Source: Bigelowiella natans CCMP2755
Taxonomy: Eukaryota; Protista; Cercozoa
Assembly: GCA_000320545.1 (NCBI GenBank)
Contig: ADNK01002806.1
Span: 1-34,632, forward strand
Reading direction: 5' to 3'
DNA: 34,632 bases
Of the stretch, positions 7,924 through 34,632 are shown piece by piece. The first letter of the stretch is position 1. The number at the start of each line of letters is the position of its first letter. The translations under genes and the position numbers were made by a program. The notes beneath the pieces were generated by a model. The model was not told the DNA's origin. It was given only the letters and a program-made list of their open reading frames with translations, and ran no database searches.

Positions 7924-9933
7924 CGGGCAAGCGAAAGAGGATATAGCCTTCCGCACATTCTCCGTGTTTTGCTACCGTTTCGAATTGCTAGAGCTCGAGC
8001 TGGATGGGGAGGAGCATGAGCAGTGCGAGACGTGTAGGGAGGTTGGTGGCGTATGACACTAATACGATAAAAGCATTTTTCTATATAATTTCGACTGCGA
8101 AAACGAAGAAGACAGTGCCGAGGGGCAATTGCTAAATCCGAATCCGTTGTCACTGTTCACCGATTTTGAATGTTTCAAAGCACCATGTTCGTAATCCATG
8201 ATCGCCAAGAATATTGTGTAGTCATCATTGTCGCTACTGTTATCGATGGTGATTAGGATGCATGTGGGGGCCCTCCACGGGAATGGTCATTTCACAACCA
8301 CCATCTTCATGTGAAAGGCCAGAAAGAGCCGGAACAACGCTGCGCTCTTGCACAGGAGCTCCTCTGGGCTCTTCGGCAAAGCAATGATGGCGGCGATTCC
8401 GGGAAGCACGCAGCAGAGATCATCACATATCTCTATCACACCGCCGAGTTCCTTGTGGAAAACTTCTCCCGTTTGCACAGGTAGGAATGAATGATTATGG
8501 CGAGGACGGCTAAAGTGATTATGATTATGATGGTGGTGGTGATGATAATTACGATGATAATGGTGGCGATAATGATGACATGACGATGACGATGCGGCAC
8601 AGAGCTGCCCCTACCCCTGCCCTTACTGTATTCTATCCTTTGCTCCCCGCGGGTAATGCTCTTTCACCATCTAAGACTCGAGAGAATACGAGGGAGCGGT
8701 CATGTATAGAAGATTTATCTTGAACAGATAGTAAAGCTTATGTAAAATTTCGCTTCATCACACCCTAAAAGGCAGTTTTGGCACATCCATGAGACCTGTC
8801 GCCATTTTCGTACGGAATTGGCAGACTCATCCATTGCTCCAAACAACGACACGCATAAGGACGAAACGGGAAGCGGGCAGGACAACGAGGGGGGGGACGC
8901 GAAGGGCAACGATGGCTCCCAAGTCCAAAGGCATTTTAGCATGCTAAATTACTACGATCACAGTTCTATCGAATGCGATTCGTCTGTCACACCAGCAACT
9001 GCTCGCCTCGCACGCCAGAGCTTCGTTAGGGAATCAATCCAACGCCTTGTGCACGTGCTAGATGAAAGTCGAGAGACGCTAGCAGCGGTTGCGGCGGCAG
9101 CAGGAGAGTCAACGACGGCAAGGAAAATAAAGCGGGATGCAGATGGAGAAGTAGGGCAACAGAACCTCGTTGTTGCGCGTAACGGTAGTAGTAACAGAAG
9201 CTATATCGGCAGCGGCGAAAGTATTGGAAATAGCTCGGACAGGGGTTCTGAAGATCGATCGGGGTCCCTCTCTAAATCCGGTTACTCATTGGGGACTTCC
9301 AAACAACGTAACGGGCGGGAGGCACAGAGAGCTGGAGCAATATGGGCGCGGACGCACGCAGAACTTGCGATATTCTGCGACATTTACCGTTACCAGTTGG
9401 ATTTTCTCAGCAGCGGTACCAGTGGCGGCGTTAGTCGCAGCGAGCGCCATGAAGGGATTAGTGACGCCGATTTTAATAATGATGATGAAGATGCCGATGA
9501 CGGGCACAACGGTGGTGGTGGGGGTGTTGCTATTCGTAGCAACCGTGGTGGGAATGATGATGATCACGATGGCGACGAGTATACATTGGTAGACGTAGCG
9601 AACAGGTTTAAAGTTCTTGATGCTGCTATGAGTGAAGGACTCCTGAGTAATCGCTCTGCAGAAGCTGATAAAAACTATGTTAGACATAGTATCGTGAATA
9701 AGAATTCCAAGGCACTTGCTAACGATCCCATTCTCAGCGGGGCAAGTATGAGCTCGATGCGGAAGATCATCGAACAACTTACTCAAAAAGTAAGCAGTAG
9801 CGTTACCAGCAAGAAGATAGGCACGAATAATGATAGAGATATAAAGAATACAGAGGAGCATGATATTTATAAAACTCTTTGCGACGAAATAGTGCTATTT
9901 GACGGTTTTCGATGCAGGACCGCTAATGACTAG
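7880..9933 (+). CDS. Hypothetical protein (multi-exon; 5' end uncertain)
   Basis: 371-codon open frame 8818-9933, open back to ~8772. An open exon-like segment at ~8258-8480 (DACGGPPREWSF...VENFSRLHR) ends in AG|GTAGG, phase-compatible with an acceptor at ~8771. A possible first exon lies at ~7880-8040. No recognised domain. Confidence 0.55.
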
Positions 9934-11397
9934 CAGCAACTTGGAGAGCAGATGAAAGTCCATCCTCACTTGTCCCTTGCATGACCATGTCATTAGCGTC
10001 CGAAAAAAGCATGGAAATCGCTTACAAGCTAGCAAGTTGAAATTTCATTTTGGCTTGTTGCGCTTTGCACATCATTGCAGGATGATGAGCTTTCACATGA
10101 TCGCTGTGCATTGCTCATTGCGTCTGCTGCAATGCTCGCACACTCAGAGACACTAGTTTCCAGAGACTCAGTGTGAATGTCATGCTAGCTGGCATGATCA
10201 TTCATTCTGCTAGCATGACACATGGACACAATGCTAGAATGACATGGCGCAAAATGAGGCAGCAAGCTAGCAACCGCTGTGCGTGTGATGCATGTTGAGT
10301 GATGAACATGAAATTGTTGTCATTGTTGTGACCGACAACACGTGCACACAGTGCAAGCACACCCATCGCAAAGCGACACTGCTGCATTCCAGCATTGTGC
10401 CATGCTAGCATGCACTGTGTCGTGCCACTGCAGTGTTTCACTGCTGACTGCATCACATTGCATCATCATGCTTGTGCTTTCTAGCTTTGCAGGGGGGCAC
10501 TTTTGGGGGAAGGGCTAGAGAGGGATGCACACGAGTGCAAAGCATTGCAAACGTGACACACAAACATGCCAGCTAGCCAGCATGACACATTGCACATGCA
10601 TGCCAAAAAAAATGTTAACAACTGCCCTCTTTGCTAGTTTTGCCCTGGGGCGACCTTGAAACGACACGACAAAGTCTCGCACTTCACCAAAACAGCAGAG
10701 CAGTCCTTCACACCCCTGAGCAATGCTTTGCGGTCCACAGGTAGCGCTTGCACAGCGACTCTGCCTTTCCGCACCACGTCGGTCCCACACAACACATTCG
10801 AACACCTTCGGAATTTCCAAGAGACACAATAATCTTCGGACACATTCGGACACATCGGACTATTTCACAACACCCAAGGGTCCCTTTCCTTTCCTTGCTC
10901 TCCTCCATGATGCAGCCAAGGGTTTCTCACTCCCCTGGAATCCCGGCAGGCATGCGCGGATTCCACTCCAAACTTTCACACATGACCCCTGTGGACCATG
11001 TGAGGGCCCTAGGACCCTCAGGGAAGCAAAAAAAAATGTTTTTTGGAAAATCGAAAATGGGCAGGGCACAAACTTTGAGTGCTCCGGAAACGCCCCTGAC
11101 TTCGCCTCCTTCCACAAAAACCATGCCAAAGTGACAGGTGCAAAAAGATCTTTCTTCTCTCAAATTTTCACAACTCAAAACACAAAATTGAACATTTCCG
11201 GAGCAAAATTGCGCGCGCAGGCACACTTTTTTGCAGTTTGTGGCAGGCGCAGCGCGGCGCAGCGGGCTCACCAGTTCATTTTTCACTGGTCAAAATTGGC
11301 ACATTTCTTCTGAAATGATTCACAGTTTCAAAATGACATGTTCAAATTCGACAGCGAGTGATGAACGAAGAAAAAGTGAGCCACGATGCACACGTGC

Positions 11398-11497
11398 ATG
11401 GTGTGTGCGTGTGTGTGTGCATGTGCATGTGTGCATGTGTGTGTGTGTGTGTGCACGTGTGTGTGTGTGTGTGTTGTCGTGTGTGCATGTTGTGTGC

Positions 11498-11563
<66 letters not shown>

Positions 11564-11615
11564 ATGTGTGCATGTGTGTGTGTGTGTGTGTGTGTGTTGT
11601 GTGTGTTGTGTGTGA
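11398..11615. repeat. Interrupted (TG)n microsatellite inside the TIR element
   Basis: About 215 bp of TG repeats, interrupted mostly by GCAT/GCAC and never by GTAT/GTAC. Confidence 0.9.
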
Positions 11616-11688
11616 ACATGCAATCAAACACCACGATGCCAGCTCTGGAGGGTTGTGTGTTCCGGATCTGCACATGCATCTTGTGTGG

Positions 11689-11961
11689 TCAGCACACAGG
11701 CATGACTGCATGGCACACATCCTTCAAACCATCCTCCTTGCAGCTTCTCCTGATGTGACGCCATTCGTCCTTGGCAACCGAGAACGTTGCCTCAAGTTCT
11801 CCCCAAGGACGTGTCTTCCCGTCCAGCCTCCTCGTCACATGTCCCCAACCGCACTTTGGCAGAGAAATCACACTGTCGTGTGCAACTACGACTCCGTTGT
11901 GTTCATGATGCACCCTCACATGACTCCCGTTCTTCAACACAAAATTCTCTGAATTTGACAT
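11689..11961 (-). pseudogene. 90-aa Tyr-less, His/Cys-rich ORF in the element; likely a hypermutated cargo gene or fragment
   Basis: MSNSENFVLKNGSHVRVHHEHNGVVVAHDSVISLPKCGWGHVTRRLDG... has 0 Tyr, 8 His and 4 Cys, but otherwise a globular-looking composition. Confidence 0.45.
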
Positions 11962-12349
11962 GAGGGAAAGAGGGCAAGGAAGGTTGGTGTGGTGTGCTGG
12001 GGTTGGCCCCAATGAGCTCGTGTGAAAAAAAGTTGCGAGCGTCACCAGAGATTTCACGTCAATTTCGGCCAAAGAAATCCATGGATGTTCACACATGAAA
12101 TTCGATTTTTCACAAGGAAATCTTCGTTTTTAGTTCAAATCCTAAAAAAATTTTCGGCTGCCGCCGAAATGAGGCACACCTTAAAAGTCCGCGCATCCCT
12201 GCCGGGATTCCCGGGGAGTGAGAAACCCTTGGATGCATCTGCTCTCACATGTATGTAGAAAACTCACAATCTTGGCGCTACAGCTGCCGCTTTGCACTGC
12301 AAGATAGCTACATTGGACTGACCACTCTAGTATTGGAGAAATGCATTCA

Positions 12350-13037: not shown

Positions 13038-13626
13038 ATGGAACCTTCTTCTGACGAGAAAAGGAAAGCGGGTGGGAAGGAGGCTAACCCCCCACCCTTC
13101 TATCCCTGGTCCGGGAATGTGAAAGATCGAGAAGAGGTCTCTGAGATTCTCGATGGGCAGCTTTTCCTCACAAATTGGCGATCTGCGCAAAGCGAAGAGA
13201 AGTGCCGGCTGTCCGCTATCACGCACATTGTTTCTGTGGGGGAAGAATTTAAAGAAGAGACACCTCTATCAAAGCCTCTTGGGATTAAATATCTTCAATT
13301 AAATGTAACAGATGATGAAGAGCAGGCTCTGGTGATGAAGAAGCGCCTTGGAGTTGGGATTAAATTTATCACAAATGCTCTCAAAAGTAGCAAAGATGCT
13401 CGCGTATTGGTGCACTGTGCAGCAGGTGAATAACAATACAAGGGGGGTACATGGCAAGTATTATTAAAATCTTGAGAGTTCTGCTGAAAGGAATTGGTTT
13501 GCAACAGCATGAAGTCATTAATTTTTATCTATCTGCAGGAATATCGAGATCTACGACGGTCGTTCTCAGCTTTCTAATGAAGCACAAAAGATGGAGATTG
13601 GTAGTAGACGTAACATCAACTTTGAT

Positions 13627-26593: not shown

Positions 26594-28803
26594 TTAATCG
26601 ATTTTGATGGACGAGTAAATCTTAACCACGAAGAGGTATGTGGCAGAGAAGCCAATCGTTCCTGTCAGGATGAAGAACCCGAGCGATATAAGACTCATGT
26701 AGCCAAAGTACAAGGCCGAGGATACAAAGTGGTCAATTCTCATCTTAGTGTAGTAGTACATTACAGAGTACAGGAATAGATATATTGCAGAGAACCCAGA
26801 GGTACAGAAGGAGCGCCACCACCAGTGATAATCCTCGTAGCAGAGTTGGAAGTATGTTGCGACGATGGAGATCTCAGCGCAGGTTATCGTGAGGATCACG
26901 AAGACTATGAACAGAAACCCGAACATGTAGTAGAATTGATGCATCCACACAGAAGACATTATGAAGAAGATTTCGATGAAGCACGCAGCAAAGGGCAGAA
27001 TACCGCCGATCAAAGCCAGGAATGGCGCCTGTGCGTACCAAACTTGCTCAGGAATCTCGTTCGGAAACTTCTTAACCTTCATCGGCAGCTCAGGGGCTGG
27101 CCTTTTCGAGGAAATGTAAGCTCCAATGTAGACTAGAGGCACGTTCATCCCAAACCAAAGCACAAGCAGCGCAATCAAAGTACCAAACGGAACTGCTCCG
27201 GAGCTCTTCTCTCCCCACACCATCGCGTTCAAAATGAAGAAAATCCCGAAGCAAACGCCAGGGAATGCGAAACTCGTGGCGAAGCTGAGCTTTCTCCAGT
27301 CGTCCAGGCCGAGGACCTTCCCGAGGAGGGTAGAAGCAAACCCGGCAAAGATCCCCATGAGAACAAAGAGCAGCAGCATGCTAGTCATCAGCCCCCCACG
27401 ATTAGCGGGAGAAAGGAAGCCAAGCACCGCAAAGAAAAGGGTAATGATGGACATTCCAATGAGCTGGTACCCGGTGCCTACTAGCACGCAGAGCGCATGG
27501 CTGAAGACGGGAGGCCTAAAGACGTCTCCATGGATCAACTTCCAGCCGGTTTCTTCCTGAGCTTCCTCCCTTTCTTCTGGGCTGTTGTATCTAAGGAGGT
27601 CTCGATGCAAGGTGCGGGTGACAATCATGGCGACCATAGCGGAGAGGAAAAGCACCACCGCAATCGAGTTGATGATAGAGAACCAGTGGACCTTAGAATC
27701 AGTCATCTTGAAGTACACATCCCATCGTGATGCCCACTTGATGTTGGAGGACTCCCATTGCACATCGTACGTCCAGAAGATTTCTTCCTCATCAGATCCT
27801 GACACAGGTTGAGGCGCCTGGCTTCTTCGCACGGGGCTGAGCGGCGTGCACGTCTTCAATTTGTTTCCATCTGGGTGGTCTCTATCCAACTCATGCTTCA
27901 CGCTGAAGGCCTCGACTTCGAACGCGACGATCTGTGAACGAAGCAACATCATGAAATCGCAATATCGATATCGAGAAACCAGAAGAGAATTTCATTATGT
28001 AAGGAATCTTACTCGATATCCCAAGAAGGACGCCAAATCTTGATGATAATGGAGGATAAGACGTGCATGATTATTTATGTATGCAATGCCAGTTTCAGTG
28101 TCATCTTGAGGATCCTCTTCGGTTGCAACGAATCCAAGAGCAAACCCTTTAGCGTAGTGAGCTTCGTATTCGCTCTCCCCGTTTTCGCCGATCTAACCAA
28201 CACAAAATACACAGAGGTCGTCTTTACAAATACCGCCTCACACTGCTATGTGTACGATACCTCTTCCGTGTAGTACTTTGTCGCAGCAGGAAGGTTATCG
28301 ATGATCCAATTAACATGGTATTCATCACGGATCTTTGACTCGAATTGCTGCAGCTCATGCTTGCTATATTTCTTGCTGAGAGATTACAATGGATGTTGAT
28401 TTCTTTGCATGGTGAAGAATAAATTTTTTTATAATATATAATCGGGAATGTTAATGTGTATCAACGGCCTAAATAATTTTAGCAAAAGAATGAATACTGA
28501 TCTCCATCTTCACAACCTGCAAAGAATTTTGCAAGACTCGATCATCTTCATGTTGATCTTGTAAAGCGAATTTTCAATCATATCCCCAGAGAGAACTTCC
28601 CCCAGGTTTTCAGCAGACTCGACAACATGACTGGGCTTGCAGAATGGCAGAGAGTAGTAGTCGTAGGGTAACTGCGTCCTCACAGAATCAAGTTTGTTTA
28701 CTTTCAGTGTGACGTTTTCGCCATACTCATAGTTCCTGGGCGATACACCAGGAAGGTAGAAGGCATCAACGATCGTAAGGGAGAGAAGTAACGATATCAG
28801 CAT
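26594..28803 (-). CDS. Transmembrane 9 superfamily (nonaspanin/EMP70, TM9SF2/4-like) protein
   Basis: Signal peptide plus AFYLPGVSP, VNKLDSVRTQLPYDYYSLPFC, ENLGEVLSGD, WASRWDVY, VHWFSIINS, EETGWKLIHGDVFRPP, EDYHWWWRSF and C-terminal KIYSSIKID. Confidence 0.97.
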
Positions 28804-32355: not shown

Positions 32356-33322
32356 ATAGTCGTAGTAGGAGAGATGGGGGGTGGTGTAACCTCAAGAAAT
32401 GTGTGAATCAACTGTTCTTATCATGACTCAAAAAACAGCATTGTTCGCTACAAGTCGAGAAAAAAAAAATGATGGTCGTTGTAGTAACTATTATGACCTA
32501 CTGCTTGAATACTTCAGGAAATGAGAGTCTGAGGCAATCTCCCACCCAAGACCTCGTGGATGAGTTCTGCCCTCTCTTTTCGTCGTCATCTGGAGAGGGG
32601 GAGGGAGAGCGTAATCTTCAAGACGTTTGCTGTGGAATGGACCCTTACGGTAACGAAGGTGGCTAATGATGAAGAAATGGGGGAGGAGAAGGGGGTGGGG
32701 GATGGAGGGGGGTACAGGAGCGACTAGGATGCAATCGATTAAATGTTCTTCATTAAAAAAAGGAAGAATTAGATGAGGATGATGAAGATGATCTATCAAC
32801 GTTGTTGCTGTTATTTGCCATTCCTCGTGGAGAAGCATTTCCCTGATGGAATGTCGCAGCAGCAGTAGAGTATGGATGGACAAATGATTTCCTCCCTCTT
32901 CTTCTTCGCCTTGTTGTCAGGCAATTCATCAGTTATGGCGCAAAAAGGATTTGACCTTCCGCTGAGGACTCGAGCATTGGCACTAGCGCTACTGCACAAC
33001 GGTATATGTGCATTATCGCCAGCACCATCATCATCATCATCATCATCAACAACAACAACAACAACCGCAACAACAACTACAACACTAGTAGCGGTGTTAT
33101 TCGTTGTCGCCATCCATCACCATGCTTTCGCACAGCATGTTTCAGGCTCTTCTACTACATGTATGCTTAGATTGAAGTATTACTTGTCGATGACTCCGAT
33201 GTTGTACCTTCCTTCCTTTCTCTCATCATGTTCTCATCAGGGATTACGTGCTGCCCCAATTCAAAGAGTCTCGAAAACATGGACTACACGGTAGTGGGGA
33301 GGGGGTCACGATGATAATACAC

Positions 33323-33382
<60 letters not shown>

Positions 33383-34632
33383 TACATAGTTAGACGATGA
33401 TGATAATGGTGCACCATGCATGCTGTGCATGTCACAATTACACAAAATGGTGATGACTCATGATCTCGATGAGTGATGAATAACAATGATGCAGAAGGAT
33501 GCTACGAAAAAAGAGTGCTGGAAAAAGTGTAAGGTACTCGTTATGAAGCGTTGTGAACGATTGAGGTGCACGTTCTTTTGCTGTTTGTCGCTCAAATTCA
33601 TCTACTCGCTGCACGTTCTTTTGCTGTTTGTCGCTCAAATTCATCTACTCGCTGATCTGCTGCTGCCAGGTGCGCAGCACTCGATCCAGGAAGGTCCTTG
33701 CCTACTGGTACTGCTATCGATGCATCGTTATGATGATATTTTGAGCAGCTGCTGCTGGGAAAAATGAGATGGAGTGAGAAGGGGGGGGGGGGGGAGAGAA
33801 GGAGCAATATGCATTTATGTACCATACAATCTCATATCCATCATCATCATGACCTTGAGCACTCATTACCAGCCTCAATTAAGGGTCGTTATCCCCCTCT
33901 CATAAATAACCATTCTCATCTTAACGCAAGCGAAAAAATAATCTTCTTGCGTTGTATCATCATGTTTGTTTTTTAACTCGGCCACCCCCCTCCCCCCCCC
34001 CCCCCTTTTTTCCCAATAGGGAGTTTGCGGACTCTGGTGATCGTGTGGATGGCCATGGCACTCATGTCTCAGGGTGAGTGACGACGACGATAACGATGAT
34101 GATGGTGATGATGATATGATAAATATAATTACCAACCTCTCCTCCTCCTCCAGGTCAGTAGCAGGATATGCTGCAGATCCATCAGCTCCTATCAATAAAT
34201 ACAAGGGAATAGCGCCTGGTAGTTGTGGATGCAACACGGATCAGTAGCACTCAATGCTATTGTTTGAGTCATTATAAGACAAGTTTATTCACAATGTCAC
34301 TTGAAGAAGAAGAAGAAGAAGATGATGATGATGATCGTTTATTTCCATTCAAAAACATAAATATATTGAATGATTACTTAGGCGCGCGCATCGTATTTAG
34401 TGACGCGTCGACTCGCAAAGGGTACCACAGGATAGGAGGGGGGGGGGGGGGGGGGGGGGCAAAAAGAACACCTTGGGTTTTTTTTTTTTTCTTCCCCCCC
34501 CCCCCCATGGGATTTTGCAGGGGGGTTTTTGGGGTTTTTTTCCCCAAAAACCCTTTTTTTCTAAAAAGAAAAAAATTTATATAAAAACCGGCGGGGGGGG
34601 GTTTTATTTGGTTTCGGGGTGGGGGGGGGGTT
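29383..34632 (+). CDS. Subtilisin-like S8 serine protease (KP-43/TagABC-like), many exons, truncated by the window end
   Basis: Propeptide GYIPHNA and VHWIE. IWEKGINGSGQIVGIH|DTGLDTSHCFF has its catalytic Asp codon split by intron 30899-31084. Then RKVLAYW|EFAD...DGHGTHVSG|SVAG (His at 34054-34056) and KGIAP|GARIVFSD. The catalytic Ser lies beyond the window. Confidence 0.88.
33567..33652 (+). repeat. Exact 43-bp tandem duplication, probably intronic
   Basis: TGCACGTTCTTTTGCTGTTTGTCGCTCAAATTCATCTACTCGC at 33567-33609 and 33610-33652. Confidence 0.9.

Follow-up and report, generated by a model that had tools for sequence, protein, structure and literature searches.

An island that has lost nearly all of its TpA dinucleotides was identified in a stretch of Bigelowiella natans CCMP2755 DNA (contig ADNK01002806.1, positions 1 to 34,632), called the window here and numbered over its full 34,632 nucleotides (nt). 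At the right of the island lies a non-autonomous DNA transposon with terminal inverted repeats (TIRs). As judged from their sequences, comparison of the copies of this element shows that the TpA hypermutation of B. natans also acts on a DNA transposon, the copies having lost TA to CA or TG independently of each other. The island as a whole is best read, with a probability of about 0.8, as the long-term scar of this hypermutation on an intergenic patch that contains a transposon and is probably heterochromatic.

Hypermutation in this species has been described by Mettrop et al. (bioRxiv 10.64898/2026.01.13.699255), who found that two integrated viral regions hypermutate approximately 1,000-fold in mutation-accumulation lines. 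The changes were almost only TpA to TpG or CpA, and the text of that preprint places all of them on TpA. It also reports 124 low-TpA clusters, with DDE and reverse-transcriptase domains enriched among low-TpA genes, draws the analogy with fungal repeat-induced point mutation (RIP), and names an ADAT2 candidate, Bn78255. The outline of the process, that is its spectrum, the RIP analogy and the ADAT2 candidate, is already in the preprint and hence not new. The direct evidence there came from viral inserts (nucleocytoplasmic large DNA virus and virophage), with transposons termed 'potential' targets; to this the present locus adds evidence, at the level of single copies, from a class II element. 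The island is like the viral regions in its host species, in TpA>TpG/CpA on both strands and in a similar fold excess. Copy-level evidence from a DNA transposon, a class of changes at ApT, the sparing of CTAG and flips between CA and TG are present here and lacking from the preprint text, in which the terms CTAG, trinucleotide and MITE (miniature inverted-repeat transposable element) do not occur. A literature search for the same TpA-loss signature in other organisms found no paper.

The low-TpA island and its transposon

The segment from 9900 to 12250 holds 24 TpA against 151 expected from base composition (observed/expected ratio, rho, 0.16; Poisson P ~6e-27 even against 0.8 times that expectation), compared with a rho of 0.81 over the remaining window and, in the two flanks, of 0.83 and 0.94. 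CpA and TpG are in excess (rho 1.75 and 1.86). Maximum-likelihood borders fall at 9932 and 12250, with 22 TpA between them, and the longest TpA-free gap of the window, 877 nt from 11010 to 11887, is followed by a runner-up of 244 nt. Of the 24 survivors, 13 are within CTAG. The sequence-only reading of this DNA had reported a near-loss of TpA over some 2.3 kb, TA-rich flanks on either side, five TpA within the TIR element and none from about 11012 to 11886, and in all of this it was right; the five are at 11010, 11887, 12131, 12143 and 12182. Its view that CpG persists needs correction, as CpG is mildly reduced (rho 0.61 vs 0.86 to 1.09 in the flanks). Depletion across the whole block holds strongly for the element and more weakly for the left 1 kb. 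A (TG)n microsatellite in the element was considered as the source of the deficit and rejected, rho being 0.07 once it is removed. With these values the island lies within both of the preprint's cut-offs (rho TpA <= 0.43, CpA+TpG >= 1.52), and at 2.3 kb it is shorter than the preprint's three-window cluster rule.

Mis-assembled or contaminant DNA was also rejected as an explanation, with the help of raw reads as the earlier reading had proposed. A contig from an independent sequencing run spans 8800 to 10848 with 0 differences from the assembly, and raw-read depth stays even over the left border of the island. Reads were mapped onto 8800-11385, leaving out the microsatellite, and those on the element mix its copies.

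A search of the genome sequence (91,405,885 nt in 3,736 contigs) identified 11 copies of the element, 95.6 to 99.4% identical, every one of them TA-poor. An exact 8-bp target duplication flanks 9 of the 11 (in two of these the copy is divided between paired contigs, and in one a solo long terminal repeat, LTR, had to be discounted). The contig pairs C2321/C2320 and C1799/C1798 each carry two halves of one copy; because the 8-bp duplications match, these contigs are taken as neighbours broken at the microsatellite or the LTR. The duplicated sequence varies between copies, and CA..TG is constant in all 22 element ends. A Tc1/mariner identity with a TA target duplication was therefore rejected, the duplication being 8 bp and differing between copies. 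TA-rich DNA restarts 20 nt past the right end of the element. It resembles non-autonomous, MITE-like elements of hAT or P type in its TIRs, 8-bp duplication, CA..TG ends and want of a transposase; its TIRs and duplication would fit either group, and it differs from them in having no autonomous partner linked to it. Three loci with a hAT-dimer match and a single broken P-like one are present in the genome, and the TIR pattern is absent from all of their contigs.

The cargo open reading frame (ORF) of the element shares 34 to 38% identity with that of a sister element whose ends are likewise CAAGGG; one copy of the sister ORF encodes Tyr at a place where His is found in three. The cargo ORF has no Pfam match, and its Atlas matches are all below threshold. 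The sister family (L069 at C3670:39702-41542, L070, L071 and L072) is approximately 1.8 kb long, with CAAGGGG ends and an 8-bp duplication, and about 15 more end matches are found in the genome. Judged by eye, its ORF product resembles a small beta-barrel.

Loss of TpA among copies, flanking repeats and sequence contexts

The 11 copies were compared by tip-level counts and parsimony step counts, with no ancestral sequence. TA is found in any copy at 14 sites, and all 14 are variable, compared to 17 to 55% of sites for other dinucleotides. Five of them have TA, CA and TG side by side, needing 3 to 6 changes on the tree. There are seven CA<->TG doublets private to one copy, when about 0.1 would be expected from independent hits, and a further 17 among three copies of the sister family, where polarity is weak. 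The simplest route for these flips would be an ordinary transition from CA to TA, followed by a fast change from TA to TG; four new TA arising from CA>TA still survive. The rate at TA per strand is about 640 times that of baseline C>T (interval 200 to 2,800), a rough value that takes unseen reversions to equal the flips, and it agrees with the ~1,000-fold excess that the preprint measured. The copies have most of the depletion in common, and that part is hence older than their spread. The substitution spectrum that the sequence-only reading had wished to see from an alignment of copies, and its claim that, within a transposon and beside it, adenines 3' of T became G on both strands, are thus borne out by TA>TG and TA>CA changes made independently in separate copies and by the published de novo mutations in the species. 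Recurrent CA<->TG flips also distort the ages and trees of transposons in the B. natans genome.

The left part of the island is mostly single-copy DNA. Approximately 0.8 kb of it is found once; a genome search gives short matches elsewhere only, with short repeat fragments near 10650-10910, and read depth is 1.1 to 1.4 times that of the flank, up to 10713. Relatives of its 98-nt dispersed repeat in TA-rich loci carry TA where the window reads CA (2 to 5 sites per pair). The direction of change in this part is taken as TA to CA or TG because relatives in TA-rich loci keep the TA.

Many CTAG in low-TpA islands are set between exact 4-nt direct duplications (34 out of 86, against approximately 1% for control 4-mers), and so are 26 out of 289 CCAG or CTGG, which are decayed forms of CTAG. 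Within the element family four 8-nt CTAG insertions can be polarised, one of them already decayed. Such scars are present in TA-rich DNA too, at 18 out of 200 CTAG, including sites 14519, 14647, 25937 and 25974 of the window. The duplicated 4-mer favours C or A first and G or T last, as in integrase targets. It is possible that these are excision footprints, which they look like, of some transposon; no source element was found. A brute-force scan for intact elements bounded by CT..AG and a 4-bp duplication turned up a single weak candidate of low complexity, which was rejected, and a literature search for such footprints found no paper.

Context effects were counted in approximately 128 kb of loci that repeat searches had picked out. 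Outside TA, A>G singletons number 16 at ApT (113 sites) and 4 elsewhere (425 sites; P=1.3e-8), such that ApT makes up 21% of non-TA A sites yet has 16 of the 20 singletons. All 16 are preceded by A or C, ten of them in AAT (41 sites) and six in CAT, with 0 in AAA, AAC and AAG (162 sites). Six more A>G changes at ApT are present in the sister family. Table S2 of the preprint (10.64898/2026.01.13.699255) includes four de novo T>C changes at ATG or ATT in a viral region, contrary to its text. The same table lists ten TpA changes outside the two named regions. ApT is hardly depleted in islands (0.94 vs 1.05), and the class is therefore weak.

Measured against background, TA survives at 0.77 in CTAG, at 0.12 to 0.18 in CTAA, CTAC and ATAG, and at 0.04 to 0.10 in the others. 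With scar-like sites removed the CTAG value stays at 0.55, so that CTAG is both resupplied and partly protected; 'CTAG sparing' being partly resupply through insertion scars, it should be used with caution. Statistically, the counts indicate ApT as a weaker second target and a 5' C or 3' G neighbour as slowing the process.

Targeting and mechanism

Whether TA is lost appears to depend upon the locus rather than the repeat. Single-copy DNA has been hit on the left side of the island, copies of the 98-nt repeat are rich or poor in TA depending on where they lie, and a 326-nt LTR with 100% identical copies in four loci has kept its TA (rho 1.23), although one copy sits inside a low-TA element. 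Together these observations point to the chromatin domain, not the pairing of repeats, as what sets the target. In B. natans a single H3K9me3+H3K27me3 state covers transposable elements and silent genes (bioRxiv 2025.03.17.643675). In two chromatin immunoprecipitation (ChIP) runs, X21 and X22, depth on the element is 33 to 43x, around three times the 11x of run X23, which is about the copy number. This enrichment is a lead only.

The TA-rich LTR has TGT..ACA ends and a 4-bp target duplication. Its copies are at L009 (C1799:15553-15878), L008/L049 (C640:47680-48005), L024 (C554:44235-44560) and L040 (C1798:1315-1641). Its last 12 nt are the line-13 'insertion' at scaffold_8:334281 in Table S2 of the preprint, where several other listed insertions end in ACA. 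Some of the indels in that table may therefore be new insertions of LTR retrotransposons, and this LTR family may be active.

In the favoured history of the island, the TIR element, with its 8-bp duplication, borders on its left upon repeat debris older than itself. The copies then show that T:A at TpA changed to C:G, on one strand or the other, many times over and separately in different copies, at hundreds of times the rate of ordinary transitions, and that fresh TpA from ordinary C>T at CpA was removed again, yielding the CA<->TG flips. Statistically, ApT is hit more weakly, a 5' C or 3' G slows the change, and 8-nt insertion scars resupply CTAG. The target would be set by the chromatin domain. 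The chemistry is somewhat more probably than otherwise deamination of adenine to inosine in DNA, by an enzyme of TadA/ADAT type favouring T beside A; the process may serve as a defence, and may equally well be a side effect of silencing. A tentative extension, which we hold at rather low confidence, is a heterochromatin-recruited DNA adenine deaminase with the motif TA >> [A/C]AT, slowed by flanking C/G and acting on any DNA in silenced domains, DNA transposons included. With its CA<->TA<->TG cycle this would be a natural chromatin-guided adenine base editor. TadA/ADAT2-3, ADAR and adenine base editors are alike in converting A to I (G) with U or T favoured 5' of the A (10.64898/2026.01.13.699255), whereas the natural substrates of TadA/ADAT2-3 and ADAR are RNA and editing of genomic DNA in B. 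natans is putative. The search for deaminases proposed in the sequence-only reading finds candidates, six PF00383 (CDA-fold) loci and one PF02137 (A_deamin) locus. The extended motif, with its ApT class and CTAG protection, and the pattern of domain rather than homology are concrete predictions that could guide the hunt for the enzyme and help to separate deamination from a thymine lesion.

A process like RIP in the full sense, in which a homology-sensing system recognises duplications and mutates each of the two copies, spreading somewhat into the flanks, is improbable. The TA-poor state of all 11 copies and of 4 sister copies is in its favour, as are the element flanks, 15 of 22 of which have 4 or fewer TA in their first 200 nt (approximately 12 expected). 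However, some element borders are sharp, including the right border here, and the flanks cannot separate spreading from nesting in old debris. The single-copy left island, the identical LTRs that retain TA and the 98-nt repeat, which loses TA in islands and retains it in TA-rich loci, all argue against it, and the chief target in the preprint is a single-copy 186-kb virus that mutates in clonal lines. Fungal RIP (RID/DIM-2) shares dinucleotide-specific transitions on both strands, selfish DNA as target, an approximately 1,000-fold rate over background and some flank effect. It differs in making TpA by C>T at CpA, where here T:A>C:G removes TpA and CpA/TpG are gained, and in needing paired repeats and a sexual cycle. 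The label of a repeat-targeted adenine counterpart of RIP, given in the sequence-only reading, is not supported as an account of targeting; the process works like RIP, but homology sensing of the RIP type is unsupported. Less credible by far is the absence of any local process, with a TA-poor composition inherited from a master copy or TA selected against as a Tc1/mariner target. The age of most of the depletion agrees with this, but the independent TA>CA and TA>TG changes per lineage, the doublet excess, the polarised flank fragments and the 26 decayed scars do not, and for this genome it is refuted by the de novo mutations measured in mutation-accumulation lines (10.64898/2026.01.13.699255).

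As for chemistry, adenine deamination is plausible, and sequence cannot separate A>G from T>C on the other strand. An oxidised thymine (5-hydroxymethyluracil or 5-formyluracil, of TET/JBP type) beside A could mispair with G and give T>C. 5-formyluracil does pair with G, and TpA and ApT are both a T beside an A, so that the damaged base cannot be assigned from them. This explanation is unlikely; there is no Tet_JBP match in the genome, in an exon-by-exon search that does not show absence. We consider about as unlikely an origin in error-prone repair synthesis in silenced DNA, with a WA>WG habit like that of polymerase eta, or in the decay of N6-methyladenine (6mA) at ApT, with another methylase for TpA. 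Polymerase eta favours TA and AA. The ten singletons in AAT would suit such synthesis, but AAA, AAC and AAG have none, and 230 of the 231 de novo changes in the hot regions of the preprint are A>G/T>C transitions (10.64898/2026.01.13.699255). ApT is the canonical eukaryotic 6mA site, but 6mA at ApT marks active chromatin, and a genome search, itself uninformative, gave no MT-A70 match.

Several points weigh against reading the island as a scar of domain-targeted hypermutation. No TA-rich master copy of the TIR element was found in the genome, and the identical contig over 8800-10848 gives no sign of present-day mutation at the locus. The sample is small, 11 copies and the repeat-selected loci, with no genome-wide estimate, and polarity rests on majority and singleton logic and a few relatives that keep TA. 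Young LTRs may be spared merely by being too young. The marks of the ChIP runs are unlabelled. The deaminase loci are candidates, none tied to the process, and tRNA-editing and nucleotide enzymes of the ordinary kind would account for them.

Features of the window

The features in and beside the island are listed in Table 1.

Table 1. Positions of the island, the TIR element and associated features, in window coordinates
Feature	Position	Strand	Description
Candidate exon	8818..9933	+	371-aa ORF without Pfam match (ORF and Pfam search); stop codon coincides with left island border 9932
Low-TpA, CpA/TpG-rich island (whole)	9932..12250		Dinucleotide counts, maximum-likelihood borders
Left island part	9932..10916		Mostly single-copy DNA, short repeat fragments, CTAG insertions; 17 TpA, rho TA 0.27
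NNNN-CTAG-NNNN scar	10025..10036		Exact 4-nt direct duplication around CTAG
NNNN-CTAG-NNNN scar	10230..10241		Exact 4-nt duplication
Decayed scar	10385..10396		Core CCAG (TA>CA) between exact 4-nt duplication
NNNN-CTAG-NNNN scar	10401..10412		Exact 4-nt duplication
NNNN-CTAG-NNNN scar	10477..10488		Exact 4-nt duplication
NNNN-CTAG-NNNN scar	10569..10580		Exact 4-nt duplication
Repeat fragment	10706..10786		Relative in TA-rich locus (L017) has TA where window reads CA (2) or TG (2)
98-nt small dispersed repeat	10781..10878		Missing from paralogous site (joint 10780>10879)
Left target-site duplication	10909..10916	+	8 bp, 7/8 match to right copy
Non-autonomous TIR DNA transposon	10917..12231	+	1,315 nt; TIRs, target duplication, copies
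Left TIR	10917..10960	+	~44 nt, starts CAAGGG
(TG)n microsatellite	11390..11620	+	CATG interruptions, inside element
Cargo ORF	11689..11961	-	90 aa, without Tyr
Right TIR	12188..12231	-	
Right target-site duplication	12232..12239	+	8 bp

Further along the window, two 50-nt inverted repeats (82%) separated by 1.9 kb at 32402-34293 form a pair that lies in DNA of normal TA (rho 0.73) and is possibly an old element that escaped the TpA process. Two host genes were recognised. A dual-specificity phosphatase exon at 13038-13433 (+) belongs to an ordinary host gene, and the protein of a TM9SF/EMP70 gene at 26594-27952 (-) is 88% identical to that of the chlorarachniophyte Amorphochlora, its closest relative.

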